A stretch of DNA of 64,000 nucleotides, from assembly GCA_030704615.1 (NCBI GenBank), contig CM060732.1:11470001-11534000 (forward strand), given 5' to 3'. Positions 13,981 to 61,492 of the stretch are shown here, piece after piece. Numbering within the stretch: the first letter of the stretch is position 1; every line of letters begins with the position of its first letter. Below the pieces are notes generated by a model that was not told the DNA's origin, did not search any database, and saw only the letters and a program-made list of their open reading frames with translations. Position numbers and translations under genes: made by a program. The stretch comes from Takakia lepidozioides (lineage: Eukaryota; Plantae; Bryophyta).

Positions 13981-14039
13981 CGTAGTGGACAAGACCCGAT
14001 TTTCAACCAAAGAGCTTAGTTGTTTGTGTGGTCAATAGT

Positions 14040-22665: not shown

Positions 22666-22689
22666 TGTTAAAAATAGAAAAATAGAAAA

Positions 22690-23985: not shown

Positions 23986-24000
23986 ATATATATATATTAT

Positions 24001-31800: not shown

Positions 31801-33500
31801 GAGATGATGAAGTCTGTGATGCGGGACTTGAGGATGGGGGTGAAATCGCAGTTCCACTTGCAAAATGGACTGCTCCGGTACAAGCAAAAGCGTCTCTATG
31901 TGCCGAAGGCAGGGATCAAAGATAGTCTCTTGAGAGAATGCCATGATGGCCCGCTTGCGGGCCATGGTGGAGCCAAGTGCACCGCGGCACTCTTGAAGAA
32001 AGAGTATTTCTGGCCCAAACTGAGGGAAGAAGCCGAGGAGTATGTCAAGACATGCACCATATGCCAACAAAACCAGAGCGAGTACAAAAAACAAGCGGGG
32101 CTGTTACAACCCTTGCCGATTCCAGAGGGATCTTGGGAAAGTGTCTCAATGGATTTCATGACTGCTATGCCGTTGTCAAAAGGATTCAGTAAAATGAGCC
32201 ATTTCATTCCACCAAGGAGACGGCAACGGCACAGGAGACGAGACGACTTTACTTAGCCCACATCTTCAAGCATCATGGACTCCCGAAGGATATTCTCTCG
32301 GACCGCGATCCAAAGTTCACAAGTAAATTTTGGAGGGCACTCTGGAAAAAAATGGGGATGAGGCTCAAGATGAGCACCACTTTCTGACGTACGACGGACG
32401 GCCAAACGAAAAGGGTGAATTTCGTGGTGAAGCAGATCTTGCGGAATTACGTGTCGGCAGACCAATCGGACTAGGTGGAGCACTTGGACGCGGTAGAGTT
32501 CTGTTATAATAACATAAAACACTCCGCAACGGGAGTTTCCTCTTTCGTATTGGTCTATGGAAAAGCACCTCTGGTGCCGACAAGTTGGGCCGCCCAAGAC
32601 ATTGAAGAACCGGCAGCAGCAGCGGTGTTGGAAGAACGCGAGCGTTTGTTGAAGCTCGCAAAGTACAACATTGCCAAAACTAGGAAATGGTATGAATGGC
32701 AGGCAAATCGGAAGCAGAGGGAAGTTAAGTTTGAGGCAGGCACGGAGGTCTGGTTGAACATCAAGAATTTCCGACTACCTCCGGAAGTGAGTCCGAAGTT
32801 CGTACCTCCGTATGCGGGACCCTTTCGCATCCGAAAGGTTATGAATGAGGATATGTATGAATTGGAGGTGCCGGCAAACAACAAGGTGTATCCGGTATTC
32901 CACGTCTCCCTTTTGAAGCCTTACTTCAAAGATGAAGCGCGTCCGAATCGGCATCAAGTGTTGCGTCCGCCACCTGTGCTGTTGGATCATGAAAATGAAC
33001 TTGAGTATGAGGTGGAGGTAGTGCTTAAGTCGATGAAGTTCAAGAATCGAGAAACGGAGTATCTCGTGAAATTGAAGGGCTATCATCATGTGGAGGCATC
33101 TTGGGTGCGTCCCTCAGAAATGGGAAACGCATCCGAGGCGGTTGCAGCTTTCGAAGGACGATCTCAAAAGCGGAAGAAGCGTTGATGGAGACATCAACCT
33201 TGGATCGTGGGGGAGGAAATGCATGCTTAGCCCGGCTTAGCTAGCTCAGGAATCCGTTTGCAAAAACTTGTATTGTACAAATTTTGTTGTAAATGAAATG
33301 GTTTCCAAATATTGTGTTTCATATCTTATTGGAATGGTGATGCATAGTATAGTTGGCTAGTGTGTAGAATGCATGCTAGCTTACAAAGTGAGAGAGGTAA
33401 ATTGGATTAGTCGTGTGTTTGTGTAGTGCCGAAATCGGGTGACTCCCATCCAAGGGGCAAGGAAACTTGCACCTTCGTTGGGAGTTCACGTGCTCGTGCG
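25900..33500 (+). mobile_element. Ty3/gypsy chromovirus LTR retrotransposon (element 2), with pol present twice in tandem
   Basis: PBS TGGTATTAGAGC at 26302. Gag 26552-27730 with CX2CX4HX4C (CFNCGEPGHMAKKC) and protease (LVDIGASHSF). RT YIDD at 28445-29359, then RNase H and integrase. Pol restarts at ~30297. Chromodomain EYEVEVVL...EYLVKLKGY...SW at ~33000-33185. PPT at ~33208. Confidence 0.95.
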
Positions 33501-37610: not shown

Positions 37611-37697
37611 GTGGAACCCCTCGGCCAGTGGGGATTGCAGCCTGTCGGACTCCCCATCAAAGTTCACCTCATCCTCCCAGTGGCAGAGGGGTTCCAC
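37611..37697. repeat. 87-bp hairpin (23-bp imperfect inverted arms)
   Basis: GTGGAACCCCTCGGCCAGTGGGG ... TCCCAGTGGCAGAGGGGTTCCAC. Confidence 0.7.
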
Positions 37698-37898
37698 ATC
37701 ACCTAACCTGCCGTTAAGAGACGCTGTAGAACCGGCAAACATTCTCAGTGTATACAATTTATCCCAATCTTAACATGAGATAAATGAATGAATACCAAAG
37801 TTCAAACTGAGGCTGTATCAATTTACTATGATTCATTTACTTTTACTCTCCCCTTGAAGAGATGGGCTCAAACCTTCCAAAATAAAAGTAGAATGTAC

Positions 37899-40800
37899 CT
37901 GGCCTGAATCTTGAAGAGCTTGTGCTTGTTTGTGACATCAACAAGCTCAGCATCACATTGACCACGTCTGTATGCAATTACTTCAAGTGTGTAATCCTCC
38001 TTTGTCTCACAATATTTACCAATGACCTTAAGAGTCATAGTAGCGGTTTCTGGTCAGAAAGAGCTCTGGATCTTTGTTTGTATCAACGATGATCTTCCCC
38101 AATGCATTATGTGCATGCACTTCTTTGCTCCCTTCACTCACAAGATGCTCTAAGAACTGAGTCAGCAATCCCAACTGGTTCCTGTCCAACCCATCAAACT
38201 GTTAGTTTGATTCATCCTGAGACAACAGACAGCTTCCACATGGAATTAAAAAGTCAGTAATGTGCCCTCTTTCAATACATTTTCATTTTGCGCATAACCT
38301 GAGAATTGACTGTGACATAGACATCATGCTAGGAGCAAACAAACAGATTAAAAATGACATAAAGCCACCCTGGAACAATTTATTACCTCTTCTCCCACTC
38401 ATCAACCACTGCCTCCACTGGCAGTAAAGAGCAGACAGACAAGATAGGGTCCTCGATGAAATCCTTGGGGTGGCCATCATCCAGCAATTGCCGAACCACC
38501 AGAGGCGCATTTTCTGGGTTCACCTGCACAAGGAAGGATCATTAGAAACTTTATTTGCATGGACATAAAAGTGACTGTTTGACCTCCAGGGCAAGAATGA
38601 TGTATACATCCAGACACACTGCAAAAATTAATGTAGAGACAAAACTAGATTAAAAAGAACACAAATAAGAGGGGACAAAATTATCACTCCCGATAACAGG
38701 TCTCTGCTTTCAGTCAGTGTATTCAGGATATTTCCTGTTCCTCCAAGAGCAGGTGCACTCAGGCCTAATGGAAAGTATATTCCGGCCCTGAGTCAAGACG
38801 CACCAGTGTAGATCAACAAAATTAACAGATTGAAGTATGATGAGCAGAGAACAAAGTGCAAGAGTGCAAAAGCAGAAATAGGACCTGAAGGGCATGCATG
38901 TAAAGACCAGCTTTCCAACAGAGCTCAGCAATTTGAGGACGGTCATAATGGCTGAACATGCCCTTTGCCAAAATTGAATCAGCTATGCTGGGGGACGCGA
39001 CCAGACTGATCTTCAAGACCTGCATAACCAACAACATTCATTTACACATGTCAGCCGCATTATCCAGTGGATTGACATGACCTTGTCGATCATATCTACA
39101 GGTAAGTACTAAGTACGTGCAAGGTAGCTATGTAAAGTGACAAGGTCATAGAAGGATAATCAAGATGCACACCATAGCAAGGGGAAAGAACAGGAAACCA
39201 ACAGACAAGTTACAGGAGGGCACAGACCATGCAAGTCCATCTGCACTGCACATTGTAAGAGTCAGAGCTAACTCTACCTTAGTTTGAAGCATGGCATGCT
39301 CTGGAAGGTTAGGCTTCAAAACATCCAGAAGAAAAGCAATTGCCTCCCTGATCATGTTGCGCTGCAAAACACAAACTCCGGATCAATAGGTTCCGCTTTT
39401 AAGCCTCAAGTTCCGGTGAAGATTAGTGAATAGAATACACTTATGGTCATCATCCATTGATTCATACCTCAAGGAACAACTCAGTTATGGTGTTGTAGTC
39501 GTCTGGGCACCCTCCTTCAAGTTGAGAGATCATTAGAGCAAAGTTCACATCACCTTGCACTCCAGTGACCAGATAAAACTTGGAACATATGCACAATATG
39601 CTAAGAACACAATCTACAAAAAACCATGGGCACTAAAGCTGAGAAGAGACGTTGTAGGACACATTTCACAGGGTCAGATTGCAAGATTGATTGCAGCAGG
39701 ATAGCCTGTAGCATAAGGAAGATATTGCTCACCTAGAGCTCAGTGGAAGGTGTTGCGCATTAGTCATCACTATGCTGCAAAATCCAGATTACATCGGCGG
39801 AATACAGGGACACATTAATGATAACACAAGTGAGGGACAATTATGGCGAGGAGATAAAATGTCCACTACTGACATGAGGACGTACCGGTGGTTTTTGGCA
39901 AATCTTCAGCAGCATCAACAATTTGTCATATATGATATGTTCTCTGGAAGGAGGTCGCGTGATATCCAGATGATCCGACTCCTCCACTTTGTAGTTGTTA
40001 CAGCCAGATAATCTTATGGCAGACTCATACGGCACAATCCAACCCTACGAGATAGAAAATTCATCTTTTCAACCACTGGAGTAGTAACACTTTCTTGAAC
40101 CTCAAAGAGTTGTTATATAAAAGGCAGCCTTCAAGATATCTAAACCACTTAGACCATAGATGACACAATTCAGCTTCTGATTCATCTGCACGGCATTGTT
40201 GCACTGTGCATCGTTGCTTGTGCAGGGAGGTTTACCATAGGTCTGTGTTCTCCACATGTGATGGAAAGTAAGCAATTCAACCTCTCAGAGGGGAAAAATT
40301 CTCCAGTCTTAGTTAATGTTGAAGCAGCACGTACACCTAGCTAACCCTAAAATACTGCACTACTTGACACTATCATAAAATGCCTTGCATCATGTTCCTA
40401 TCCAATTAGTAAATTTTATTAGTACCAATACTCCGCAGCATTTCTTGGTTTGTCATTATGAGAAACTCCAGAGAACGTACCCAATTTTGTGTTGGTTTGC
40501 CCTCTCCGAAAGCAAAGATGTGGATTTGAAGTCTACAAATAACTCCCTCAAATTCTGTTGATAAACGCTCAATCAGGTCGTGTTGTATATTTCCTGAGGG
40601 CTCCAATTTACCAAAACTTCCCAAGTTCATTGCGGAATGGGGAACAGCATAGTGTGCAATGCCTCGGAGATTTGATAAGAACGCTTTTGCATTCTCAGCA
40701 GCCTCCTTGTCCAATTCGTTCGCACATGGCATGGTTTCAGTCCTTGCAGTATGTACCACTAAGCTCTTCACAGCCAAACCTCCGTAGCCATGGCCAACAA

Positions 40801-41385
40801 GCACAATTGGTGTTTGCCATCCGAAACTGGAACGAGATGAACTGCACATGAACAGGATCAAGCAATATCAGATTTTGATCTTGGACGCCAAAATGTGCAT
40901 AGACATTTCCAGATCCTGTTCTGAACAGCTAACCCTCACCATTTCCTTTCAACATCTAGGTGGATAAGATCGAGGACTAGGAGCTAGGCTCCGGATCTGC
41001 CTTCACATTCCAGCGAAAGTGAGAATCTCTTTTGACTGCCTAAACTTCTTGTTCAATGAACAGGCTAGCAAACCATAGTATTCAAGTGAGAAGCAATGTA
41101 CCTGACTAAGCTTTGCTGCAACCTCCTGCCAAAGTCGTCAACAGCTTGGATGTTGGAATATCTAACATCTGCACTATGAGATACGAGTAGAACACGCACT
41201 GTTCCTTCCAGGTCTTCTGGCAGCCACTTCACTGGCCAGGAGAGTTCATGATTGTCATGATGCACCCATGTGTGCTGTGAAACACTGCTTTCCTTTCCAA
41301 ACTAGAATCCATGGAAAAAGATGACATCCAGGGTGGTTTCCCGATCATCGTTAGGGGGTGGCCACACTTGTTGAACAAGGTAAAC
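37899..41385 (-). pseudogene. alpha/beta-hydrolase - clathrin heavy chain fusion gene (copy B, most complete hydrolase)
   Basis: Exons encode LDVIFFHGF...TW...WPVKWLPEDL...RVLLVSH; PIVLVGHGYGGLAVKSL...FGEGKPT; GWIVPYESA...DHLDITRP; then CHC peptides [75 protein letters not shown] and [16 protein letters not shown] junctions throughout, with scattered stops. Confidence 0.85.
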
Positions 41386-41942: not shown

Positions 41943-44900
41943 TGTACTCATAAGACGTTGTTTGCCGTAGCCTTGTGGCCATTGACCCCGCGCCCAGTTT
42001 GAGCGGGAATAAAAGGGACAGAACCTACCTCTGTCAGGGGCTGATGTTGGTACAAAGTTGGTAAACAGGGGTACAGGCACAATTCCCTTGATAGATTTGA
42101 AGAGAGCGTCTCTTTGGTGAGAGAACCCCGGACAGTGTATCAGAAAATGAATATTGTCTTCAGTCTAGTGCCGAGAGTGGGTAGACCCTTGAGGTCATCC
42201 AAGATGTCCTCCCCCATGTCACTGACTGGAAACAAGTTCAGGGAAGTTTTCTGCCTAACTTCATTTTCATCAGACAATCTCATGGCAACAGACATGGCTT
42301 TGGACACTACAGCCTCTAAGTCAGATTTATCCAGCAGGGTCAAGACTTGCGGATCCAGGTCCAGGTCCTTGAGAATCTCTTCTACTCTCTTCTGCCAGGA
42401 CTTAGCCTGTTTGACAGGGCGGTCCTGTTTCCAAGATATAGAGTCGACTAACTTAGGATATCTGGTGTTGGGCATATGTTGCAGCTGACCCCACCATCTG
42501 ACCTTGAATTCATCTCGTCGGGAGCTTAAGGACGGAATGCCAAACTCACCTGGAACAGCCACATTGGCTGTTTTGGAGCATGCTGACATACACTCCTTAA
42601 CCACCCCCACTTGAATGGATTCTAGAGACTTAGCCTGGTTGGAGTTATCAACCCATATTGCAGATCCGTACTCCAAGGCAGGTCTAATAACACGACAAAG
42701 CATGGTTTTCTTAACCTCAGAGTTGACCCCTCTGCAGTGGAAAAATTTAGTGAGCCCCAGAGCTTTGCCCTTGCCAGTTTGAACAACTTTCCAGATATGT
42801 GCATCCCAATTACAATTGGAGGAAAACTCAACACCCAGGTAAGTGTAGGAAGGGAGGACCGGGATCTCTTGGCTACCCCACTGCCACTTAAGATCACTTC
42901 CTCCCTCTCCTCTGTCGTTGAATGCTACCACTGCACATTTGCTGACATTAGCCTCTAGCCCCCAAAGATCAAAGTATCTCTTCGCGCAATCAATCAACTC
43001 CTGGAGATTGGTTGGAGTCTCCCCTATGCCTGCGAAGTCATCCGCAAACATAAGGGCTGGTATGGTGGTATCACCCACCCTTAACCCAAATCCCTCACTT
43101 TCCACATCCTTGAGGAGTTGATTGATGAAAACATTGAAGAGCAGAGGGGAGAGAGTACATCCTTGAGCTACACCTTGGTCTATGTCAAAGAAGTTGGACT
43201 TCTGTCCGTTAACAGTGACACAGCTTTTGGTGTGAGCATACAAGTTGTGGACAACTCTCCACATCTTTCCCTTGATCCCACAAGACCAGAGGCGGAACCA
43301 TAGGCCATCTCTCCACACTGTGTCATAAGCCTTTTTGACATCCAGGAAAAAAACATAAGTGGGTTTCCTTTCTTTTTTCCTTCCCTGGATAATCTGGCTT
43401 AGAGTGAAGATATGATCCACACAGCCCCTGTTTTGCCGAAAGCCAGCTTGGCCTTCGTGGAAACAACCTCTAGACTCCAGATCAACCTTGAGACGAGTAC
43501 TTATAACTCTGCAGAATGTCTTGCCAACAGCATTGAGGAGCGTGATGCCACGGTAGTTCCCCGGTTCTTCTCTGTCACCCTTCTTGTATAGATTGACAAT
43601 GACCCCCTGTTGCCAGCGAAAGGGGATCATTTCAGTCTTCCAGATAAGGTTAAAGAGGAGAACTAGGGCCTCTATCATGGGATCGCCACCGTGCTTGATA
43701 AGCTCGTTGACAATACCATCAGGTCCACCAGCTTTATATCCATTTAAATGTTCAATTGCTTCCACAATCTCAGAAGAACTAATGGGAGCGTTATAAGCCA
43801 TTAAAATATACTCCAGTTCATCAGGGCTGTTTTGAATCATAGGAACAGTTTTTCCAACTGTGTCCCTCCATTCAGCAAAAGACCCCTCACTGTTAGACCT
43901 AGAAGTTCTGCCAAGGATACTGTAGTGAGTTTCAAAGGTTTTGACAATGTCAACCGATGAAGTCACCACTGCACCTTTAGTAGTCTTCAGCGCTGGTACT
44001 TGCTGACCGTTTTTCAGCTTGTACAAACATTGAAGGGCCAACCAGAATTTCTTGTCATTACCACCATGGTGGTTTGAGTTTATTTCACTGTATAACTTGT
44101 CCCAGTATAATTTCTTCTGAGACCTAACAAGCTGATTGATATCTTTACGGAGCTGGTAGTACCTCGCCCACAATTCTCTGTTGGTTTTCAAATTGCAGCA
44201 CTCTTTATAGAGGGCTCGTCTCTCAGCTATCTTGAATTTAATCTCATTGGTCCACCAATTAACAGCTCTACCGCAGACAATTTGTTTCCTCCCGATGATC
44301 TTGTCAGCCACGGAGGAAACGAAACTCTCCCAAGAGTCCACTGCTCTTTCGACTTCATTTCTTGCGTTGTCAGAGCGAGACTGAAGTTCTTGGAGCGATT
44401 GGACAAAATGAGGGAGAGCCTCTTGCAAGGCCTGGACGTACTCAGCCTTGACCTCCTCATTATGGAATTCTTCTATGCGCCACTTCCGAATCGAACGTTT
44501 CACAGATCTCTTGGTGTTGGGAAAACACCTTTTGATCTCAGTCCAAACCAGGAAGTGGTCAGAGGTACCAATATCAGTTCTGTCGATCAACACATTGGCA
44601 CACTGGGGGAACAAATTTTTGTCCATTATGATATAGTCCACAACGGAACGTTCCCCAGTTTGGGATTTCTCACGAGTCCACTGCACTTGGTCACCTCTTG
44701 TCCTGTTATTCAAGGTGAAAAGCTGAAGCTCTTCCAGGCAGTTAATTAACCGTCTGCCATTAGAATTCAGCTCGTCCTTACCAAAAGGCCCAATGATATC
44801 GTCCTGATGGAGCCCTTTGCCCACCCGTGCATTGAAGTCACCCAATAGCACCACCTGACCTTTGGCAAGGAATGAAGCACAGTCCAGCTTTACATCTTCG

Positions 44901-46300
44901 AAGGCTTTGTCTGCGTCAGCACTGAGGGTCCCTCTGTGGGCATGTAAACACAACCCACAAAGAGGTCCTTCGTACTCATGCCTTCAGATTCAGTTTTAGC
45001 CAGATACTATGCTCGTACCTCAAACCCTTGTTGATAATTTCACAATTGTCAAACAAGAAATCATGGACAAAGAATCCAACCCCTTTTTGACCGCGTTTGG
45101 CAGAGGCTGCCTTGAGAGTACACATCTTACCTGCCCATTTATAACCATTGACATCTCCAACCAGTTTATCCGACGTTTCCCATGTTTCTTGCCCAGCACA
45201 GATATGAATATCATTAGTCCGAAGAACTTGTCCCACTTCAAGTTGTTTCCTTTGGTTGGTCAACCCTGAGAAGTTGAAAGTGGCCAGCCGCAAGCCAGCC
45301 CTTTGCATGTGAATTGTTTGTCGTCTAGGTAGCTTGTGATTGCTCCTGGACGGCCAACCATTCTGCAAAGGGAGGACAGTTACCCCATGTGTAGATTTTG
45401 CTCGTCTTGTGTAAACTTTGAGAATTGGTAAACCATTCAGGGTACCAAATCCTTCAGTTACACGACTCACAAGCTCCGCACACATAGGGACAGATTGTCC
45501 GTCAGACTGCTTGGGGACAATTACCCCGTGTATAGATTTTGCTAGTCTTGAGGATTGGTAAACCATTTAGAGTACCAAATCCTTCAGTTACACAACCTTC
45601 AGGCTCTGCACACTTAGGGACAGATTGTCCATCTGACGGCTTGGGGACAATTACCCCGTGTATAGAATTTGTTCGTCTTGTGTAAACCTTGAGGATTGGT
45701 AAACCATTCAGAGTACCAAATCCTTCAGATTCAGGACGTTCAGGTTCCGTACACATAGGGGGATCTTGTCCTTCTGGCTGTTTGGATTCAACCTCATCCA
45801 GGGCATCAAACCGATTAGAAACTATCCTTGCCCTTGGTTGTCTTCCTAGAGCACCCCATTGAATCACCAATGTTTAAGACCGCTCTCCAGCCAATCAAGG
45901 GACGAACTTCTTTGAGATTGAATTGATGTGGGACTCTATTAGAAGCACTTTTGGTCATTGCAACCTTCAACGTACCCCTGTTATCAAGTCTCGAGATGGA
46001 ACTATTAGCCATGAAATCCAAGCCTAAGCTAGAGCATGTAGTTTTAAAGGACACATCGTCCATCCTGGGATTCACCCCAAAAACTACACATGAAGCCCTA
46101 GATTTGGCATAAGTAACCAATTCCCAGGAATCACCCTGAGGATGTTCATAGGAGCTAAAATTTTGATTGTAGTCGCAGGCTATAAGTTTAAGCACAGGAA
46201 CCAACCCGAGCCCAAGTGCTGAGTATGCTAGACAGAGCATACTACTGCCCAATTTGGGGGGAGGGCTGCCCCCAAGCGGTAAGGGTCCGCTTGTTACCAT
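41943..46300 (-). mobile_element. RTE-like non-LTR retrotransposon (LINE), near full length
   Basis: APE endonuclease (LATFNFSG...QETW at 44976-45310; GDFNA and SDH in ORF 42140-44953, frameshift at ~44960). RT (KAYD, GVAQGCTLSPLLF, FADD, YLG) and RTE-type RWWGQLQHM..TRYPK. Upstream ORF1-like region. Confidence 0.92.
45380..45730 (-). repeat. Three ~115-130-bp tandem repeats within the LINE 5' region
   Basis: Each encodes EGFGTLNGLPILK(VYTRR). Confidence 0.85.
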
Positions 46301-47189: not shown

Positions 47190-47829
47190 TATATGGCTAT
47201 GTACATATACCAAACATGATACCAATGTAAGAGTATCAACGTGTGAGAGTTTGATATATTAAACTTATATGGAACACATATCCCAACTTCAACATGATAC
47301 CTTACATAAGGGTATCCAAACAATATTATTTTTGATAATTCTCAAGATGATGCAACGGAAGCCTTTCATCAATTGTCAAGTTTGATTTTGTCTGTTTCTT
47401 TCGGAGCCAGCCATGTTTCTTTTTGCCAATGAATCACAGGAAGCTGCTGATCTCTCTCCGTCTCTGGCTCTCCCTTTCTCGCTGAGGCTGATGAGGGTGG
47501 CTTCACAACTCCACAATTTCCTCAAGGGCACAAGAAAGAGGGCCAGCAAGAATAGACGGGCAACATATATTTTTAGCTTATACTCTTAGATGTGTATAAG
47601 TATAATTTGAATATATATATATGCATATATATTATATATTATATACAGAAATAAATTAAAAATTACATATTACAATTCAATTGAATCGTGTGCCGACAAT
47701 TCAATTGAATTGCAAATTAGGGTTGTTTTCAAGCTAGTTTTAGTAGTTCAAGTGAATTGCGCACTTTTAGGGGGGTGATCAAGTGAATTGCGATGCATTT
47801 CACATCAAGGCCTTTTTGGAATTCCCTAC
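47190..47829. mobile_element. Internally deleted derivative of the element at 52254-61492
   Basis: 47195-47440 resembles 55237-55545, and 47540-47829 resembles 61247-61492. Both end at the same sequence CATTTCACATCAAGGCCTTTTTGGAATTCCCTAC. Confidence 0.8.
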
Positions 47830-48804
47830 ACGTTCACTTATTAACACTCCGCACCCATTCGGACGAGTGTTGGACTGGTATATAGGGTCTGGTCGGGTAT
47901 CAACCAAGGTATTGAATAACCGACACAGCTGGTATTGGCTGTTGTAATACTATGGTTAATAATCGTAGCATTCGTGAGCTGCTTGCTCGCCGCATAGCCA
48001 CCATCTGATTGGCCCTGAGGAGGACGGCTATGACATGGTAGCGTGGCTCCGTATGCATATGGAGCCCTACTACAGGCCTCCACCAACCTGGCCACCTCCA
48101 ATAGACCCCGCAGCGACCACCGGTTATTTCACAAAATGTTCTTCTTTCGCTCCAATCCATTTGTCTTTTGAGTACAACCTCAGCGTAATACATTTGCAAT
48201 GTCGACTACAGGCAATCGATATAGGACCAATCCGATTATGATTTACGACCTACCTACTATTACTTATACCAACCTTCTAGGTGGTATTAAAACGAGATAC
48301 CTTGCATGAATCCATCGCATATGTGTACAGCCACAAATAGACAAGCGAAACACAAAACTAGTGCAAATGAATGGTAAGAAACCCTAAAAGTTTATCAGGT
48401 AGTTGAAAAAGGGTAGGTCGGAAGCGGCTTGCAAGCTGCCCTGTACTGCTACGTTAGATAGTGCCTGCATGTCACCCTACCACCGTTAATAGTAGGGGCT
48501 CTGGATATACCTCGCTGCTGCCGTAGCTCGGTATATACGGAGCCCCTACTATTAACAATAGCAGGCTCCTCGCAGCCACTATCTAGTCCGAATCGGCTGG
48601 TATTGGCAATTCCAATACTATGGTTGATAACCGGACCGGCTGGTATTACAATACCCCTGCAATACCGCAATACCCATAACCGACCACCTCGATGTTGAAA
48701 GGAAATGGTGAGGGTTAACTGTTCACAACAGAATCTGGAAATGTCATGCACATTTTGGCGTCCAAGCTCAAAATCTGATATTACTTGATCCTGTTCATGT
48801 GCAG

Positions 48805-51800
48805 TTCATCTTGTTCCAGTTTTGGATGGCAAAAACCAATTGTGCTTGTTGGCCATGGCTACGGAGGTTTGGCTGTGAAGAGCTTAGTGGTACATACTGC
48901 AAGGACTGAAACCATGCCATGTGCGAACGAACTGGACAAGGAGGCTGCTGAGAATGCAAAAGCGTTCTTATCAAATCTCCGAGGCATTGCATACTATGCT
49001 GTTCCCCATTCCGCAATGAACTTGGGAAGTTTTGGTAAATTGGAGCCCTCAAGAAATATACAACACGACCTGATTGAGCGTTTATCAACAGAATTTGAGG
49101 GAGTTATTTGTAGACTTCAAATCCACGTCTTGGCTTTTGGAGAGGGCAAACCAACACAAAATTGGGTACGTTCTCTGGAGTTTTTCATAATTACAAACCA
49201 AGAAATGCTGCCGAGTATTGGTATTAATAAAATTTACTAATTGGATAGGAACATGATGCGAGGCATTTTATGCTAGGTGTCAAGTAGTGCAGTATTTTAG
49301 GGTTAGCTAGGTGTACGTGCTGCTTCAACTTTAACTAAGACTGGAGAATTTTTCCCCTCTGCGAGGTTGAATTGCTTACTTTCCATCACATGTGGAGAAC
49401 ACAGACCTATGGTAAACCTCCCCGCACAAGCAACGATGCACAGTGCAACGATGCTGTGCAGATGAATCAGAAGCTGAATTGTGTCATCTATGGTCCAAGT
49501 GGTTTAGATATCTTGAGGGCTTCCTTTTATATAACAACTATTTGAGATTCAAGAAAGTGTTACTACTCCAGTGGTTGAAAAGATGAATTTTCTATCTCGT
49601 AGGGTTGGATTGTGCCGTATGAGTCTGCCATAAGATTATCTGGCTGTAACAACTACAAAGTGGAGGAGTCGGATCATCTGGATATCACGCGACCTCCTTC
49701 CAGAGAACATATCATATATGACAAATTGTTGATGCTGCTGAAGATTTGCCAAACGCCACCGGTACGTCCTCATGTCAGTAGTGGATATTTTACCTCCTCG
49801 CCATATTTGTCCCTCACTTGTCTTATCATTAATGTGTCCCCGTATCCCACTGATGTAATCTGGATTTTGCAGCATAGTGATGACTAATGCGCAACACCTT
49901 CCACTGAGCTCTAGGTGAGCAATATCTTCCTTATGCTACAGGCTATCCTGCTGCAGTCAATCTTGCAATCCGACCCTGTGATATGTGTCCTACAACGTCT
50001 CTTCTCAGCTTTAGTGCCCATGGTTTCTTGTAGATTGCGTTCTTAGCATATTTGCCTAGTGTGCATATGTTCTAATTTTTATCTGGTCACTGGAATGTAG
50101 GGTGATGTGAACTTTCCTCTAATGATCTCTCAACTTGAAGGAGGGTGCCCACAACACCATAATTGAGTTGTTCCTCGAGGTATGAATCAATGGATGACTA
50201 CCATAAGTGTATCCTATTCACTAATCTTCACTTGAACTTGAGGCTTAAAAGTGGAACCTATTAATCATGAGTTTGTGTCTTGCAGCGCAACATGATCAGG
50301 GAGGCAATTGCTTTTCTTTTGGATGTTTTGAAGCCTAACCTTCCAGAGCATGCCATGCTTCAAACTAAGGTAGAAGCAGCTCTGACTCTTACAATGTGCA
50401 GTGCAGATGGACTTGCATGGTCTGTGCCCTCCTGTAACTTGTTTGTTGGTTTCCTGTTCTTTCCCCTTGCTATGGTGTGCATCTTGATTATCCTTCTATG
50501 ACCTTGTTACTAGTCCCCCCCCCCTTTACATAGCTACCTTGCACGTACTTAGTACTTACCTGTAGATATGATCGACAAGGTCATGTTAATCCACTGGATA
50601 ATGGGGGTGACATGTGTAAATGAATGTTGTTGGTCATGCAGGTCTTGAAGATCAGTCTGGTCGCGTCCCCCAGCATAGCGGACTCAATTTTGGCAACTGG
50701 CATGTTCAGCCATTATGACCGTCCTCAAATTGCTGAGCTCTGTCGGAAAGCTGGTCTTTACATGCATGCCCTTCAGGTCTATTTCTGCTTTTGCACTCTT
50801 GCAGTTCTCTGCTCATCATACTTCAATCTTTTAATTTTGTCGATCTACACTGGTGTGTCTTGACTTCAGGGCTGGAATATACTTTCCATTAGGCCTGAGT
50901 GAATATTTCGTCCCCTCTTATTTGTGTTCTTTTTAATCTAGTTTTGTCTCCAGATTAATTTTTGCAATATGTCTGGATGTATACTTTATCCTTGCCCTGG
51001 AGGTCAAACAGTCACTTTTATGTCCATGCAAATAAAGTTTCTAATGATCCTTTCTTGTGCAGTTGAACCCAGAAAATGCGCCTTTGGTGGTTGGGCAATT
51101 GCTGGATGATGGCCGCCCCGAGGATTTCATCAAGGACTTTATCTTGTCTGTCCACTCTCTACTGCCAGTGGAGGCACTGGTTGACGAGTGCGAGAAGAGG
51201 TAATAAATTGTCCCGATCTTTATGTCATTATTAATCTGTTTGTTTTCTCCCCGCATGATGTCTATGTCACAGTCAATTCTCAGGTTATGCACAAGATGAA
51301 AATGTAAGGAAAGAGGGCACATTACTGACTTTTTAATTCCATGTGGAAGCTGTCTGTTGTCTCAGGATGAATCAAACTAACGGTTTGATGGGTTGGACAG
51401 GAACCAGTTGGGATTGCTGACTCAGTTCTTAGAGCATCTTGTGAGTGAAGGGAGCGAAGAAGTGCATGCACATAATGCACTGGGGAAGATCATCGTTGAT
51501 ACAAACAAAGATCCAGAGCTCTTTCTGACCAGAAACCGCTACTATGACTCTAAGGTCATTGGTAAATATTGTGAGACAGAAGATTACACACTTGAAGTAA
51601 TTGCATATAGACTTGGTCAATGTGATGCGGAGCTTGTTGATGTCACAAACAAGCACAAGCTCTTCAAGGTTCAGGCCAGGTACATCCCAACTCTATTTTC
51701 CGTCATTTGTGATTCTGTCTTGTGTTTTGCATGATGTCGTAGAAATGATAAAGAAATTACTTGACTACATCTTGTTGGCGCTTCTTAGGTATGTGGTGGA

Positions 51801-52020: not shown

Positions 52021-52510
52021 CACCTCTAAAATGATCTCTTTGCACTCTGGTGGCATTCAACGACCATGGGGAGGGAGGTGGGGATCTCAAATGGAAACAG
52101 GGGCGGGCCAGTGCTCCCTTCCTACACTCTCCCTCCCTTCTTACGTCAAAAGGACCATGCTTCACAATGTGATAAGGCCTGCTTTGGAGTATGCATCAGT
52201 CGTGCGAGTTGACAACTCCAACCATGCCAAGTCCCTTGAATGCATCCAGGTTGTACCAAACGCTCCTCAACACACACACTGAAAGAAAGAGCTTGATCAC
52301 ATGGTTTGTCTTCAACCTGCCCACACTGTGTACTGTGGTTTGCTAATACATTTTAGGATAGAGTAGTTGTTGTTTCAAAGTACATTTGGTTCATCTACTT
52401 GATAGCCTATGTGAACTTTAGTGACGTAAGTCTTATGGGGAGTGTGTGAGTGGATACAGTGACTACAGAATTAACAGCAAACAATTACAACAAGGGCAAG
52501 GTCGAAAGCA

Positions 52511-54248
52511 TTGGCACTGGGGCTATTAAGCAGAGATAAGACAGATCATGTGAACATGGACAACAACCATTTGGATGGTGACAAAGTAGTGGATGATTTA
52601 GTACTTTATGTGGAAGCAATGTTGAATGAGGGTGCCACAATGAAATCAATCGCCACTGCCCTTGCTTTTGATGATGTACGACCATTGAGAAGATTGCTAT
52701 CAGAAGTCCAAGGGTCTCCTTTCAAAGTTCATCATGAATTGAGTGTCCAATGCTTGTGTGAAAAGATTCAAGAGTTACTTCCTATTGAAGAGAATGGGTC
52801 AAATTGGGGAATGAGAACAGTGCAATCTGCCTTAAGGAGGTCAAATTGGCGGATTCCTCGAAGGAAGGTGGGGGAAGCTTTGAAAATCATCTCACCCTAC
52901 CATTATGAGCGTAGGAGAAGGGCACAGGCAATTCGGAGGACTCAGTATAATGTGACAATGCCTATGGCTCTATGGCACATTGACTGTAAGTATTTTATCT
53001 CATGCATCTTAATGTTCTTTGAAGATGCACATGCAAGACGTTTTCTTTGTATTACATATCGCACAAAATTGTAGGCAAACTAAAACATGTCTGCAATTCG
53101 TGGTGCAGCTTATGACAAATTGATTATGTTTGGTCTTCGAGTACATGCTGGCATTGATGGGGCCTCTCATTTTGTTTTATGGGCGAACGTTGCAAGAAAC
53201 AAGAAAGAAAAAACCATTTTCAAAGGATATCACGATGCAGTTTCCAAGTTTGGAGCACCTTTACGAATTCGATCTGATTTTGCAGTAGAGCACTCTCTTA
53301 TAAAACAACACATTGAAGCCACACGTTCTGAAACACCCAATCCGTACTTGACTGGGTCTTCTACACACAATCAGGTTAGTGTTCTATACAATTCTATCTT
53401 GCATATCAACTTTACGTTTCTGTCATATTTCTTGGTTCATCTTTATTAATCTTTGAGTGTGTAATGTTGTGCATATTCCTAATACTTTGTGTGGTGTAAT
53501 CACCACGTTAGAGGATTGAACACTTTTGGCGGCATCTATGGGAGAAGGTAATGTTCTACTACAAAAATTGCTTCCAAGCAATGGTCAATGATGGATTATT
53601 GGATATGGACGATCCGTGGCAACGAGAATCTTTTATTGACGTATATATGCCCATACTACAAGAAGCTGTTGATGAATACGTGAAGATTTGGAATGGACAT
53701 CGAGTTCGCACGATAATGAAAACGGTCGATATCGTCGATCACATGTTCCTGCTCGTTTCTTTCGCGAGTATGAACGTTTGCATGGGTAAGCTCATGGTTT
53801 TCTCTTGTTTGTACTTTCATTGTTAAGCTACAATTTACATTGGAATGTTATTCTAATGTGGTGATGTGTTTGATCATGTAGATGGACCAGCCACCTTATT
53901 GATGACCCACGATTCAGGAAGACCCCCGACACATTGGTAACCAAGACTTGGGGCCTCGTGGGAATCAAAGGTGGCGATGTGCAGGTGGTTTGCATGACCT
54001 TCCTACCAAAAGAGCTGAACTCATTCCTGACATGGTTCGTGTCCGTGCACAAGCTTATGAAATTGGAAAGGTTGGGAAGGATTCGATCTCTTGTTTTCAT
54101 CTCCACTACTACATGTCTCGGTATTGTGGTTTGGCAACGCATGAACATAGATATTTTGATCAATTGGACCTCATTAGTAATACCGTGTTAAGTAGGGAAG
54201 CTCTCCAACTTTTAATTACACAAGCTCTTGTATGTAATTGTGATTAAC
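52511..54248 (+). CDS. Intron-containing DDE transposase / integrase-core protein of the IS3-related eukaryotic (IS3EU-like) type; frameshift near 53715
   Basis: Splicing ...52985/53109-53374/53512... yields WGMRTVQSALR, PMALWHID-SYDKLIMFGLRVHAGIDGASH, GAPLRIRSD, GSSTHNQ-RIEHFWR and WNGHRVR. The D, D and E residues are intact. Confidence 0.8.
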
Positions 54249-54329
54249 TGAATAAGTGGGACAATCACATTCAAAGATAATTATTTTATGTCACGTACTT
54301 TGAGGATTTCTGTTAAATAAATGTCATCT

Positions 54330-56460
54330 TTTCCCTTCATCATATCCATTGTCCATATTGAACCATACACCCTAAACCATTATCATCTCCCAACCATACT
54401 ACTTGGGGGCAGGGCCTGGGTTGTACGATCTCTGGAGGGTTGTGAAATTGTTGGGTTTCATTGGGAAGTGCACAGCGTGAGGCTCATGAGGCCGCCTTTT
54501 ATCTCCAACAATCTTTGTCTGCCCCACATATGAGACAATGATGACCAACTTGCCTCATTTTCAAGAACCCTCTATTCATAATCTAAGAATTTTGCATACA
54601 GTAATAAAAATCTGAATATACACTCATGGAGACACGAATATTCAACCAGGACTTATAGCTGCACCCTTGTCTCTTATATGCCATGTACCTTGAGTTTAAA
54701 ATCTGATAACTTGTGTTCTGTTGATTGGAGTCATGGTTTCTCCAACTGCTGTATACCTTCCATAGCCACCGAGAGGTCTATCTCTCCAGGTTTTAGAACA
54801 CTCCTGTAGCCTGTACAACCACAAAGTAGAATTTTTTTGCTTCCATGTAACATTTATTTTTCTCACATAAGTGGTCAACAACCTTACACTTGGCATGATA
54901 GGTTAGGAGTCTACTTTGAGATGCCCAAGTCAAGTTTCAACCTCTACTGAATGGACGCCCTTTGCGCAGGTGTAGTGGTATAGCGCTTGATTACAACAGA
55001 ACTTAGTTAATTTTGGTAAATTAGTCTATATGCAGGTAGAGGTATCGTCATTGGGTACTAGCCCTGTTTGGTATACTCACAGAGGTACAGCGCTTGATTC
55101 CAAAGAAACTTAGTCAAAACTACACCATCTGTAGGTAAGGGTATCGTTATGAGGTAGTTTCCCTGTTAGCATGTTTCATCTGCACCTTGAGACACTAACC
55201 AATTTCATACTGCCAAGCCCTTATAGTGCCAATATACGGGTATGTACATATACCAAACATGATACCACTGTAAGAGTATCAACGTCTAAGAGTTGATATA
55301 TTAAACTCTCTATCGAACACACAGCCCAATTGCAACATGATACCTTTGTAAGGGTATCGAAACAAGATTATTGGAGATAATTCTCGAAATGAACATGTCT
55401 TTTGTTTTCTCTGGGGTTGTGTCATGGGGGCCAGATACTAGTGCCAGGGGAGTACATGATGATGCAGGGGAAGCCATTCATCAATTGTGAGGTTTGAAAT
55501 TGTCTGTTTCTTTCAGAGATAGCCATATTTCTTTTGCCAATAACGTGCCTTGAACCACCTTGTGCCATTTCCCACAGTCGCTCCGCTTTCAATTTGAACC
55601 TGTAACGCGCCTTGTTCTCATACACCCTCTTTCTCTTATCTGCATCCCCATAGATCTTCATGTTCGTTCTATGGTAATTTTGTTTTCTCTTCTTCCTATC
55701 CGTAGGGCGACCAGGCTTACCTGGAAGGAGGCGAGGACCTCCACACTTTACCACAAGGTGGTTTTGGAAGTTATGTTTGTCCTTCCAACCCATGGAAGGT
55801 CCTTCGCCGCAGATCAAACAAAACCAATGTCCATTCTCCCGTTTGTAGTGCACCCCCTCTTGTGCAAACGAACCACCTAAATAACATAGATAGTGGATGT
55901 GTGAAATTAGGCATACCAGGGTTTTAGAAATGGAGATTCACCTACATGATGATACCTTTGTAAAGATATTTGTCTCTAGGCATCTATTATACTTCTGTGT
56001 TTAGCACTACACCTATCCTGCACATAATGCACATACCTCTGTACAGAAAAGACACCTTTTAATACCTCTGTGGAAGTAAAGACGTTGCATACAATCCAAG
56101 CAATAAAAGAATGAAAATGTACTTGAAACTAGGAATCCCCTAGGAGTCCCAAGAGTTGTAAATAAGCATGAACTTACTTCCTTGCCCTCCTAGCACTCCT
56201 TGCCCTCCCCTGTACGCGCCGGCTCTGTCGAGGTAACAGGAGTTGGTACGACGTCACTGTTTGCTACAACAGACACAACGCAAGATGAAGGGGCTTCATG
56301 ACGTCTTGACTTCACTTTGATACGCTTCCCTGTTATGTTGGATCTTCCCATGTTTAGATACCTTCCTGTCTCCTGGAAAAAACAATGTTGTTTGAAAAGC
56401 ACGGTGCTCCGAGCTCGTAGCACTGGACCCCTATTCCTATCTTCACAAAAAGACAATGTT
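54330..56460 (-). pseudogene. Multi-exon accessory gene with C2HC-type zinc finger(s), convergent with the transposase
   Basis: ORF 55422-55853 has WFCLICG-x13-H-x4-C followed by a K/R-rich tract. A second HHCLICG motif lies at ~54525-54545. Donor GTAAGT at ~56177. A possible upstream exon at 60558-60818 lies beyond the LINE insertion. Confidence 0.5.
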
Positions 56461-57018
56461 GTTATAGGGCAGAGAACACACCCTGAAGTTGTCTACTGTT
56501 GCCTGCAAGCTCTTGAGATGTGGCTCTTTTTTTAGCAGATTGGCCAGCAACCTAATATTGCGGAGACAATAAACACCCAACAGTCACACTGACCATCAAC
56601 CTAAACTTAATTCCAAGCATTACAGACGAGCCATGACACAAACACTAACCCCTTCACTCCAATTGTTCTTCATGTGTTTTGCTCACAGACTAGTTTACCA
56701 GTTAGGGCCTTCTTGCTCACATCTTCAAAGAATACAAGCACTGCAAACACATGTTGCTGGCTAGCAAGGTTCAAGTCACACCCTTCCAATGGAAATGACA
56801 GCAGAAACAAAATGAAGCCAACCAACTCCCTAAACTCATTTCCTAACATTGTTAACCATGCTGAGCACCACATCTGAAATAAGCATGTCTCAGATTGATT
56901 TAGATATGTACCTTGTCACGAGTGGTGCATGTAGCTTCCCTGTACCCACAGTAAACCCTGACTATTGTTACAATTTGCACAAAAGCTTGTCAAGTAACTT
57001 TCACACCTACTCTTATCC

Positions 57019-60000
57019 TTGAGGTCATCCAACATGTCCTCCCCCATGTCACTGACTGGAAACAAGTTCAGGGAAGTTTTCTGCCTAACTTCATTTTCAT
57101 CAGACAATCTCATGGCAACAGACATGGCTGAGGACACTAGAGCCTCTAAGTCAGACTTATCCAGCAGGGTCAAGCCTTGCGGATACAGGTCCAGGTCCTT
57201 GAGGATCTCTTGTACTCTCTTCTGCCAGGACTTAGCCTGTTTGACAGGGCGGTCCTGTTTCCAAGATATAGAGTCGATTAATTTAGGATATCTGGTGTTG
57301 GGCATATGTTGCAGCTGACCCCACCATCTGACCTTGAATTCATGTCGTCGGGAGCTGAAGGACGGAATGCCAAACTCACCCCGAACAGCCACATTGGCTG
57401 TTTTGGAGCATGCTGACATACACTCCTTAACCACCCCCACTTGAATGGATTCTACAGACTTAGCCTGGTTGGAGTTATCAACCCATATAGCAGATCCGTA
57501 CTCCAAGGCGGGTCTAATAACGCGACAAAGCATGGTTTTCTTAACCTCAGAGTTGACCCCTCTGCAGTGCAAAAATTTAGTGAGCCCCAGTGCTTTGCCC
57601 TTGCCAGTTTGAACAACTTTCCGGATATGTGCATCCCAATTACAATTGGAGGAGAACTCAACACCCAGGTAAGTGTAGGAAGGGAGGACCGGGATCTCTT
57701 GGCTACCCCACTGCCACTTAAGATCACTTCCTCCCTCTCCTCTGTCGTTGAATGCTACCACTGCACATTTGCTGACATTAGCCTCTAGCCCCCAAAGATC
57801 AAAGTATGTCTTCGCGCAATCAATCAACTCCTGGAGATTGGTTGGAGTCTCCCCTATGCCTGCGAAGTCATCCGCAAACATAAGGGCTGGTATGGTGGTA
57901 TCACCCACCCTTAACCCAAATCCCTCACTTTCCACATCCTCGAGGAGTTGATTGATGAAAACATTGAAGAGCAGAGGGGAGAGAGTACATCCTTGAGCTA
58001 CACCTTGGTCTAAGTCAAAGAAGTTGGACTTCTGTCCGTTAACAGTGACACAACTTTTGGTGTGAGCATACAAGTTGTGGACAACTCTCCACATCTTTCC
58101 CTTGATCCCACAAGACCAGAGGCGGAACCATAGGCCATCTCTCCACACTGTGTCATAAGCCTTTTTGACATCCAGGAAAAAGACATAAGTGGGTTTCCCT
58201 TCTTTTTCCTTCCCTGGATAATCTGGCTTAGAGTGAAGATATGATCCACACAGCCCCTGTTTTGCCGAAAGCCAGCTTGGCCTTCGTGGAAACAACCTCT
58301 AGACTCCAGATCAACCTCGAGACGAGTACTTATAAATAAGCAGAATGTCTTGCCAACAACATTGAGGAGCGTGATGCCACGGTAGTTCCCCGGTTCTTCT
58401 CTGTCACCCTTCTTGTATAGATTGACAATGACCCCCTGTCGCCAGCGAAAGGGGATCATTTCAGTCTTCCAGAGAAGGTTAAAGAGGAGAAGTAGGGCCT
58501 CTATCATGGGATCGCCACCGTGCTTGATAAGCTCGTTGACAATACCATCTGGTCCAGGAGCTTTACCTCCATTTATATGTTCAATTGCTTCGACAATCTC
58601 AAAAGAACTAATGGGAGCATTATAAGCCATTGAAATATACTCCAGTTCATCAGGGCTGTTTTGAATCATAGGAACAGTTTTTCCAACTGTGTCCCTCCAT
58701 TCAGCAGAAGACCCCTCACTGTTATACCTAGAAGTTCTGCCAAGGATACTGTAGTGAGTTTCAAAGGTTTTGACAATGTCAACCGATGAAGTCACCACTG
58801 CACCTTTAGTAGTCTTCAGCGCTTGTACTTGCTGACCGTTTTTCGGTTTGTACAAACGTTGAAGGGCCAAGCAGAATTTCTTGTCATTACCACCATGGTG
58901 GTTTGAGTTTATTTCACTGTATAACTTGTCCCAGTATAATTTTTTCTGAGACCTAACAAGCTGATTGATATCTTTACGGAGCTGGTAGTCCCTCGCCCAC
59001 AATTCTCTGTTGGTTTCCAAATTGCAGCACTGTTTATAGAGGGCTCGTCTCTCAGCTATCTTGAGTTTAATCTCATTAGTCCACCAATTAACAGCTCTAC
59101 CGCAGACAATTAGTTTCCTCCCAATGATCTTGTCAGCCACGGAGAAACGAAACTCTCCCAAGAGTCCACTGCTCGTACTCAGCCTTGACCTCCTCATTGT
59201 GGAATTTTTCTATGCGCCACTTCCGAATCGAACGTTTCACAGATCTCTTGGTGGTGGGAAAACACCTTTTGATGTCAGTCCAAACCAGGAAGTGGTCAGA
59301 GGTACCAATATCAGTTCTGTCGATCAACACATCGGCACACTGGGGGAACAAAATTTTGTCCATTATGATATAGTCCACAATGGAACGTTCCCCAGTTTGG
59401 GGTTTCTCACGAGTCCACTGCACTTGGTCACCTCTTGTCCTGTTATTCAAGGTCAAAAGCTGAAGCTCTTCTAGACAGTTAATTAACCGTCTGCCATTAG
59501 AATTCAGCTCGTCCTCACCAAAAGGTCCAATGATATCGTCCTGATGGATCCCTTTGCCCACCCAGGCATTGAAGTCCCCCAATAGTACCACCTGACCTTT
59601 GGCAAGGAACGAAGCACAGTCCAGCTTCAAAACTTGTGAGGCCTTGTCTGCGTCAGCACACAGGGTCCCCTCTGTGGGCATGTAAACACAACGGACAAAG
59701 AGGTCCAGCAGAGTACTCATGCCGCCCTTCAAATTCAGTTTTAGCCAGATACTATGCTCGTACCTCAAACCCTTGTTGATAATTTCACAATTGTCAAACA
59801 AGAAATCACGGACGAACTTATTTGAGATTGAATTGATGCGGGACTCTATTAGAAGCACTTTTGGTCATTACAACCTTCAACGTATCCCTGTTATCAAGTC
59901 TCGAGATGGTACCATTAACCATGAAATCCAAGCCTAAGGTAGAGCATGTAGTTTTAAAGGACACATCGTCCATCCTGGGATTCACCCCAAAAACTACACA

Positions 60001-60218
60001 TGAAGCCCTAGAGTTGGCATAAGTAACCAATTCCCAGGGATCACCCTGAGGAGTGTTGATGTTGATAGGAGCTAAATTTTTGATTGTTTTCGCAGGCCAT
60101 AAGTTTAAGCACATGAACCAACCCGAGCCCAAGTGCCGAGTATGCTAGACAGAGCATACGACTGCCCAATTTGGGCGGAGGGGCTGCCCCCAAGCGGTAG
60201 GAGTCCGCTTGTTACCAT
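57019..60218 (-). mobile_element. Second copy of the RTE-like LINE, deleted and frameshifted, nested in the IS3EU-like element
   Basis: ORFs 59133-59858, 58010-59197 and 56916-58295 are near-identical to 42140-44953. Internal deletions at ~59170 and ~59815. The 3' end is missing. Confidence 0.92.
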
Positions 60219-60458
60219 TCAGAGATCACACTCCAGGGAGTTGCAGGGAATGGCCCGTGTAGGCATATTCTAAAGAGGGAAAGGCCCCAAGCTTTCCAAC
60301 TAAATCCAATGCACTACCTTACCTGAAGCAAAACGCTTAAGGTCGAAACAAACAAGGACACGAGGTCAGAAGGCCGGCATTTAGTGACAGAGACATTAAT
60401 GTACTCCCGTTTCAAGTCCACCCAATGTCAATAGGCTTCCTAGAGGACAGGGAGAAAC

Positions 60459-60460
<2 letters not shown>

Positions 60461-60502
<42 letters not shown>
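60461..60502. repeat. (GA)n microsatellite
   Basis: Direct reading of the sequence. Confidence 0.95.
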
Positions 60503-60505
<3 letters not shown>

Positions 60506-60914
60506 GAAATGAAATAGGGTCTGGTTGTTTGTTTCTCCCTTGGCACCTAAGGTGATATTAGTTGTCCTCCGCATACATATCCAGCACACCAGAAAGAGAA
60601 GAAAGCTCTTTGAACTTACTTGAAGCATCTTGTATTTTCGAGGGTGCAGCATCCTTCATACTCAGGATGGACACGGTTGCCTTACCAAATGTGTCAGCTC
60701 TGCTGCTGCCTCTTCCTTGGCCTCTTCCTGTCCACCCAACCATGACACGTACCATGAAAAACTCACTTGACATTTCTATCCCACTCTTCTTATTGAGTAA
60801 ACCAGAAACAATAGACAATCATGTAGCCAAGTGCTACGCGATGAACAGCTGTAGAATCTAACAAGCGAGGACTGGGATAAAAACAGAGATAAGAATGCGT
60901 ACGTTGCCAATCCC

Positions 60915-61160
60915 TCTGTAGGTATACTAAACAGGGCAACTACCTCATAACGATACCTCAACCTGCATATAGGCTGATTTGACCAGGTTTTTTTGTAAGT
61001 CAGGCGCTATACCTCTGGTGGTATACTAAACAGGGCTACTGTCTCATGACGATACCTCCGCATAAATATAGATTAATTTGGCCAACTTTTCTTGTAAAAT
61101 GAAATACTATACCTCTGTAGATATATCAAACAGGGCTACAACCTAATGACGATACCTCTA
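60915..61160. repeat. ~100-bp tandem repeats, inverted relative to similar repeats at 54970-55170
   Basis: AAACAGGGC(A/T)AC....ATGACGATACCTC occurs three times here. The reverse complement GGTATCGT(C/T)AT...CCCTGTT occurs twice at 55040-55167. Confidence 0.75.
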
Positions 61161-61364
61161 CTAGTATATATGTGTAGTATATATCTCTCCTTTAGGGTAC
61201 GCGACTCATGTCGTGACTTAGGCCTTACCACAAGCAAAGAATGGACGGGCAGCAGGAATAGACGGGCCAGCATGTATATTCATCTTATACTCTCGTATGT
61301 ATATGTGTATACAATACATATACATGATCATATATTATATACAAAACTGTGTTAAAAATTATAG

Positions 61365-61492
61365 ATTACAATTCAATTGAATTGCAAATTAGGGTTAGTT
61401 CAATTGAATTGGCATCGCAATTCAATTGAATTGGCATCTGATCAAGTGAATTGCACTGCATTTCACATCAAGGCCTTTTTGGAATTCCCTAC
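61365..61492. mobile_element. Putative transposon terminus with repeated TTCAATTGAA / CAAGTGAATTG subterminal motifs
   Basis: The same terminus occurs at 47670-47829. Homology to the empty paralog (3826 onward) resumes right after 61492. Confidence 0.7.

Follow-up and report, generated by a model that had tools for sequence, protein, structure and literature searches.

Does the block at positions 52254-61492 of a 64,000-nucleotide stretch of the Takakia lepidozioides genome (contig CM060732.1, positions 11,470,001 to 11,534,000, hereafter the window) hold an unusual mobile element of a land plant? The initial annotation described it as an IS3EU-like DNA transposon with spliceosomal introns and a convergent C2HC zinc-finger gene, bounded on its right side by a defined terminus. 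Overall, it appears that the block is probably what remains of a decayed cut-and-paste DNA transposon of the GingerRoot/IS3EU group, whose right end survives and whose left end is lost. Therefore, the class proposed in the initial annotation, an IS3EU-type transposon with spliceosomal introns in a land plant, stands, while the zinc-finger gene does not stand as a part of it.

The block carries an integrase-type transposase gene in four exons at 52460-54316 on the plus strand, and the catalytic residues are spaced as D-57-D-35-E. Throughout the protein comparisons the exons of the window gene were used as separate queries or pieces. Exon 2, which translates as (S)YDKLIMFGLRVHAGIDGASH...PLRIRSDFAVEH...SSTHNQ, with LRIRSD ahead of SSTHNQ, matches the integrase-core family PF24764 (rva_4) of Pfam at 7.6e-15, and exon 3 matches the same family at 2.8e-7. 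Exons 1 and 4 gave no Pfam domain even at E<=5, and neither a zinc-binding HHCC motif nor GPY/YPYY was found in them; the histidine and cysteine residues of exon 1 are conserved in neither of two loci from another land plant, L001 and L002. In an alignment with 17 homologues the family signature reads LWHIDG.HKLIRW..VHGGIDGFSR...RVRSD.G.EN...SVHNQRIERLWRD, the pieces of the window gene fall in register with it, and WHID, RSD and NQRIE are kept across the family. Based on the rva_4 matches, the spacing and the alignment, the reading of a WHID/RSD/HNQ-RIE signature with an intact DDE triad is confirmed. A literature search on PF24764/rva_4 returned unrelated papers only.

The predicted fold is in keeping with this assignment. 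The N-terminus encoded by exon 1 appears helical and helix-turn-helix-like, as judged by a fold model and by weak profile matches in the PDB. The AlphaFold model of P0033, an algal homologue from the family alignment, has a mean predicted local distance difference test score of 70 (above 88 over most of the core) and resembles the cores of MuA, TnsB, IstA and retroviral integrases (Foldseek E 5e-5 to 1e-3), with template modelling scores by target of up to 0.68 for the ASV/RAV cores. A profile comparison with PDB sequences gave marginal matches only, namely helix-turn-helix repeats and the HTLV-2 integrase core at E 0.6.

The exon structure can be compared with contigs of X1, a public run from the organism coded A, which is probably a transcriptome; its record is silent on RNA, so that this is a guess. 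The X1 contigs skip all three introns of the window gene at 97-98.5% identity. Since they differ from the window gene by 1.5-3%, they derive from another copy. Two introns had been placed exactly at the catalytic motifs in the initial annotation, and the contigs bear this out and add the third one. Intron 1 begins one base past the codon of the first catalytic D, and intron 2 lies between HNQ and RIE. Both L001 and L002, at about 50% protein identity, have intron 1 at the matching position, and of the two only L001 has intron 2. A single X1 contig splices from 53374 to 53882, omitting exon 3 together with the catalytic E, and represents either an alternative splice form or a deleted copy.

The comparison with the contigs also reveals two single-base differences in the window gene, which is short of one base after 53713 (a T in the X1 contig), ahead of the conserved NGRYRRSHVPARFFREYERLH, and of another after 53916 (a G in the X1 contig), a second frameshift. 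In L002 the equivalents of RIEH...HRVR and NGRYRRSHVPARFFREYERLH share one frame, and the exon-4 block ...IGNQDLGP...IGKVGKD...CFHL.YY is attained only with the two extra bases, in a family frame that is confirmed in L002 and in a third locus, L003; the stop codon in this frame lies at 54245-54247. Because the comparison with L002 and L003 keeps the family frame, both differences are frameshifts of the window copy rather than errors of the contigs. The window copy retains D, D and E, yet would lose the conserved C-terminal third. Judged from its sequence, with two 1-nt frameshifts, a lost left end and a long interspersed nuclear element (LINE) nested inside, it is to be regarded as dead and unable to move by itself. 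The spliced contigs, though only guessed to be RNA, suggest that the organism transcribes and splices a near-identical copy whose frame is open, and the GingerRoot family may still be active there.

The second main feature of the block is its right end. At 61491 the block ends as ...GGAATTCCCTA, and TAGGGAATTCCAAAAAGGCC is found twice in the window, at 61472-61491 and at 47809-47828, both on the minus strand, with 0.02 occurrences expected by chance. The two right-end copies are identical over their last 34 nt and about 69% alike over 250-290 nt, both contain subterminal CAATTCAATTGAATTG repeats, and their flanks part directly after ...CCCTA, with CCCATC... following 61491 and CACGTT... following 47828. 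Because two copies end identically with different flanks, position 61491 is a genuine transposon terminus, as the initial annotation had proposed. No inverted partner of the terminus was found within the 64-kb window, and a scan of Joint Genome Institute metagenome contigs for the terminus gave no match.

A complete relative shows what kind of element such a terminus belongs to. In an exhaustive protein search with exon 2 the best matches were short open reading frames (ORFs) of 45-65% identity, and those that were traced derive from long contigs of one ENA assembly; this is from a land plant, with TIR1-type F-box and DUF4216/DUF4218 ORFs nearby. One cluster of homologues has at least five members at >=90% protein identity on five contigs, and is transposon-like in its behaviour. 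In L003 the orthologous gene (9363-11044) lies within an element at 8415-15513 with inverted ends of about 800 bp that are 89.5% alike; the left terminus is TAGGGTGGACCAAAAGGGCC, the right end is ...CCCTA (as GGTCCACCCTA / GGCCCTTTTGGTCCACCCTA), and an identical 6-bp flank, CCTGTG, stands on each side. L004 has the same left terminus as L003 with another flank, and L001 has inverted arms of about 400 bp around its gene. No convincing target duplications were found for L001 or for the L002/L005 unit. The window terminus TAGGGAATTCCAAAAAGGCC and the L003 termini fit the common pattern TAGGGnnnnCCAAAAnGGCC, and L003 therefore supports the link between this type of terminus and this transposase family at the level of the family. 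When L001-L005 and the whole L003 element were compared with the window by tblastx, the transposase gene was the only shared sequence, and no HECT ligase was found in the window. Other homologues come from a green alga, amphioxus, a hemichordate and fish, in agreement with the published range of GingerRoot; a profile search with the family alignment gave many candidates, with fish, alga and fragments among the matches listed.

Two further observations were made in these relatives. HECT-domain ORFs lie beside or inside related copies (L003:5401-5712, L003:14014-14307 and L001:8198-8479), of which L003:14014-14307 falls within the 8415-15513 element with its inverted ends and 6-bp duplication. 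The 11-mer TAGGGAATTCC, which is the start of the window terminus, occurs at L004:1898-1908, about 6 kb from the GingerRoot copy; it may be there by chance or be the end of a related family.

On the left side the block has no comparable boundary. Two copies of the neighbouring region exist in the window, and their homology halts at 52253 (corresponding to 1521) and resumes at 61484 (corresponding to 3818). The block had been reported as absent from the paralogous region at 1520-3825, and indeed nothing of the sequence of 52254-61483 was found at 1521-3818. However, the other copy has 2.3 kb of unrelated sequence there, and the block is therefore a case of replacement rather than of clean insertion. 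Position 52254 was considered as a transposon end and rejected, as the contigs of other transcripts break at the same junction (52253/52254); the 51 nt at 52254-52304 lie within deeply covered contigs of other transcripts, with loose ends on both sides. In L003 the gene begins about 970 bp inside the left end, and by analogy the left end in the window should be expected near 51.6 kb, about 1 kb upstream of the gene. This site now holds a duplicated region with a clathrin fragment, and therefore the left end is lost; the initial annotation was right on this point, and 52253/52254 is a junction of rearrangement. The features of the block are listed in Table 1.

Table 1. Position of the transposase gene, the right-end copies and the other features of the block in the window.
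Feature	Position	Strand	Remarks
Upstream remnant of transposase gene	52254..52459	.	Left edge is the rearrangement junction
Transposase exon 1	52460..52985	+	First ATG 52556; ends ...MALWHID; D1 codon 52982-52984
Intron 1	52986..53108	+	123 nt, GT..AG; X1 contig joint 52985->53109
Transposase exon 2	53109..53374	+	YDKL...HAGIDGAS...RIRSD...SSTHNQ; D2 codon 53276-53278
Intron 2	53375..53511	+	137 nt, GT..AG; contig joint 53372->53510, cut +2
Transposase exon 3	53512..53785	+	RIEHFWRHLW...WNGHRVR; E codon 53518-53520
Intron 3	53786..53881	+	96 nt, GT..AG; contig joint 53784->53881, cut +1
Transposase exon 4	53882..54316	+	C-terminal ...HIGNQDLGP...IGKVGKD...CFHLHYY; X1 contig stops at 54316
Tandem repeat	54974..55167	+	Two units of roughly 100 bp
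Segment X-left	55222..55541	.	About 85% homologous to 47190-47430
Cys/His ORF	55422..55853	-	143 codons, GTG start; read as a truncated gene fragment
90-nt piece	56464..56553	.	Inside deeply covered contigs of two runs (X1, X2), unlike flanks
Nested LINE, frameshifted	56916..60218	-	APE (apurinic/apyrimidinic) endonuclease and reverse transcriptase (RVT_1, Exo_endo_phos_2)
Tandem repeat	60910..61170	-	About 2.6 units of the repeat at 54974-55167, in inverted orientation
Right terminal region	61244..61491	+	Subterminal CAATTCAATTGAATTG repeats; ends ...GGCCTTTTTGGAATTCCCTA at 61491; flank CCCATC
Short second right-end copy	47190..47828	+	X-left, 108 bp, terminal segment; identical last 34 nt

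Whether the gene and the terminus belong to one and the same copy is the point on which the interpretation of the block turns. The initial annotation linked the two by adjacency, and the ends and the 6-bp duplication of L003 uphold this link for the family; for the window copy itself we lean towards a single copy, on the grounds of orientation, spacing and type of terminus. The gene is directed at the terminus, and the distance from the gene to the right end, about 3.9 kb in the window with the LINE excluded, is like that in the complete relative L003 (about 4.5 kb). Several points weigh against reading the block as one decayed element. The window shows neither a left inverted end nor a target duplication, and the continuity of gene and terminus over 7.2 kb is argued solely from the three features just named. 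At 47190-47828 this right end stands without a transposase. The two arrays of roughly 100-bp units (54974-55167 and 60910-61170), which are inverted, 5.7 kb apart and 72-78% alike, bracket the middle of the block and might mark a separate element; they may derive from the inner stretch of long inverted ends, or represent a repeat or other element of independent origin. The placement in IS3EU/GingerRoot was made by hallmarks and published descriptions rather than by a tree with reference proteins. Finally, the RNA status of X1 is a guess, and its contigs, at 97-98.5% identity, are not demonstrably of the window copy.

These points give some room to the strongest alternative, which we regard as possible though rather unlikely, that two remnants lie side by side: an end-less transposase fragment from 52254 to about 54900, and a one-ended, non-autonomous fragment of GingerRoot type from about 54974 to 61491 to which the terminus would belong and which received the LINE and the gene fragments. 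In that case the superfamily of the terminus would be correct, but gene and terminus would come from different copies. The short copy at 47190-47828 is such a compact unit of X-left and terminal segment lacking a transposase, the inverted arrays enclose the zinc-finger and LINE part, and the surroundings are a patchwork of duplications and rearrangements. In the short copy X-left and the terminal segment are only 108 bp apart; therefore, the sequence between them in the block was either inserted later or deleted from the short copy. Against two remnants, the direction of the gene and its L003-like distance from the terminus would be as in one element, and neither a second terminus nor a junction signature is seen at 54316-54974. 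A single decayed element thus remains the reading that we prefer.

The zinc-finger gene of the initial annotation corresponds to a Cys/His ORF on the minus strand, between the transposase gene and the right end. The ORF exists; its motif, C-x2-C-x11-H-x4-H(-x4-C) with a basic stretch behind it, could be called C2H2-like just as well as C2HC. Its core at 55552-55825 is 96.7% identical to an 848-nt X1 contig, which is unlike the window on both sides, and four of the seven listed differences fall in third codon positions. Where the contig has ATG CAT the window has GTG CAC, and the first ATG in the window lies past the CxxC; therefore, the window ORF is without a start codon. The homology to the paralogue breaks off at 55552, and the tail at 55422-55541 is a read-through into X-left. 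The ORF belongs to no Pfam family, has no relative among 5.8 billion proteins (in a word search confined to lengths of 79-250 aa), gave no protein-atlas lead above 0.86, and has no counterpart in L001-L005, in the complete L003 element or in the short right-end copy (47190-47828). From its sequence we read it as a truncated gene fragment and not as a working partner of the transposase.

It is thus very unlikely that the block is a new IS3EU-like transposon of plants whose convergent C2HC zinc-finger gene works alongside the transposase. The position of the ORF on the opposite strand before the right end, the close paralogue with its share of third-position differences, and the IS3EU families of rust fungi with a second gene in opposite orientation (PMC12730594) speak for it, whereas the missing start codon, the truncation at 55552, the absence from the relatives and from the databases, and the fact that the superfamily is already known in plants speak against it. 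It is likewise improbable, if slightly less so, that the core at 55552-55825 is a lineage-specific family carried by GingerRoot as a passenger, and that its paralogue is a functional, transposon-borne DNA-binding protein unknown outside the lineage. Least probable of all is a domestication, in which the host would have turned a GingerRoot transposase into an immobile gene with a cellular function. Spliced contigs with an open frame and the shared site of intron 1 in different plants favour it. Against it stand the two frameshifts of the window copy, the multi-copy nature of the family in the related plant (at least five copies on different contigs), the inverted ends and target duplication around one relative (L003), and the presence, downstream of the gene, of a terminus that matches the transposon type.

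A possible history of the locus as one decayed GingerRoot/IS3EU element can be described as follows. By analogy with the family, the D,D35E transposase of an active element would bind the inverted ends TAGGG......CCCTA, excise the element and reinsert it with a 6-bp target duplication. In the window copy, two 1-nt deletions would have thrown the C-terminal third out of frame, and a rearrangement may have removed the left end, so that the right end at 61491 alone would remain. The LINE, the truncated Cys/His ORF and pieces of expressed genes, such as the 90 nt at 56464-56553, were presumably added later between the gene and the right end. The 51 nt at 52254-52304, ahead of the gene, are likewise read as a piece of an expressed gene; both pieces lie in contigs of X1 and X2. 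Besides the transposase, the only coding matches of the block in Pfam are the reverse transcriptase and endonuclease of the LINE.

The neighbourhood of the block is rich in other repeats. A second LINE copy at 42140-46300 (minus strand), with a 937-codon ORF, is 93-97% identical to the nested one; the homology of the two begins at the same 3'-side point (42187/57017), which suggests a duplication at the DNA level over two independent retrotranspositions. An inverted duplication, 37688-40963 against 48684-51551, has arms that are 92-97% alike in several blocks, and encloses this LINE and the short transposon-end copy. Ty3/Gypsy coding segments at 6300-10300 and 26500-33200 encode gag, protease, reverse transcriptase, RNase H and Integrase_H2C2, in three partly tandem copies that are 89-95% alike. 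An AT-rich satellite at 22650-24007 is composed of units of about 77-79 bp, in at least 14 copies with a CCCTTAGGACT...CCTAAGGAGTCCTAAGAGG core. At 17945-19558 (minus strand) lies an intact 537-codon pentatricopeptide repeat ORF with E, E+ and DYW deaminase domains, of the organellar RNA-editing factor type; on the basis of this ORF the host is a land plant.

In annotation, it is advisable to mask the block as a degraded GingerRoot/IS3EU element containing a LINE, and not to count it as two genes; beyond this it is of little importance. Of modest use are the evidence for three spliceosomal introns in the transposase gene of the family, the first of them conserved between plants (with X1 guessed to be RNA), and the terminal motif TAGGGnnnnCCAAAAnGGCC, common to two plants, which could help to locate further copies.

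How does the element compare with known systems? Polintons/Mavericks have a protein-primed DNA polymerase, capsid genes and AG..TC ends, unlike the block, in which neither gene was matched and the ends are TA. Retroviral and Ty3/Gypsy integrases, MuA, TnsB and IstA share the RNase-H-like D,D35E core, which the predicted fold of a family member appears to match; however, the identity is 9-18%, and the window gene lacks a zinc-binding N-terminal domain and does not belong to a retroelement. The window's Gypsy elements carry an integrase of their own (Integrase_H2C2), which is different from the transposase gene. Closer are Ginger1 and Ginger2/TDD, which have an integrase-related DDE transposase and of which Ginger2 likewise makes 6-bp duplications, but Ginger ends are TG..CA in place of the TA found in the window and in L003, and Ginger1 has H2C2, GPY and YPYY whereas no H2C2 domain was found here.

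The closest systems are GingerRoot and IS3EU. Cerbin, Wai, VanBuren and Jiang described GingerRoot from Selaginella lepidophylla in 2019, with 6-bp duplications, mostly TA..TA ends and inverted repeats of 100-150 bp, and without HHCC, GPY or YPYY; matches were found in 18 Bryopsida and three Lycopodiopsida species and in many aquatic animals, gene fragments are frequent inside the elements, and expression was detected in some mosses (PMC6839031). IS3EU elements in turn have TA..TA ends and a 6-bp target site duplication, and the IS3EU of Repbase forms one lineage with GingerRoot at 99% bootstrap (Kojima 2023, PMC10045372). The fungal families end in TAYGG..CCRTA with inverted repeats longer than 30 bp (PMC12730594). 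Therefore, plants are not an unusual host of such an element, contrary to the initial annotation: with the superfamily known in mosses and clubmosses since 2019, an IS3EU-type element in a plant is ordinary. Differences remain on both sides. The inverted ends of L003 are about 800 bp long, compared with 100-150 bp in Selaginella; the window copy is one-ended with a broken gene, and has three introns in its transposase gene, while none are mentioned in PMC6839031. From IS3EU it differs in the third terminus base, a G here and a Y in the fungal families, and in having no alpha-kinase or TET/JBP gene. With GingerRoot it shares an integrase-type DDE transposase without HHCC, GPY and YPYY, a right end in TA, gene fragments inside the element and, in the relative L003, the 6-bp duplication. 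With IS3EU it shares the first catalytic D at 100-300 residues from the N-terminus and the lack of HHCC. The Cys/His ORF, though read as a fragment, has, like the second gene of some families, an orientation opposite to the transposase. The relative L003 has TA..TA termini with a 6-bp duplication, its TAGGG..CCCTA resembling the TAYGG..CCRTA of fungi.

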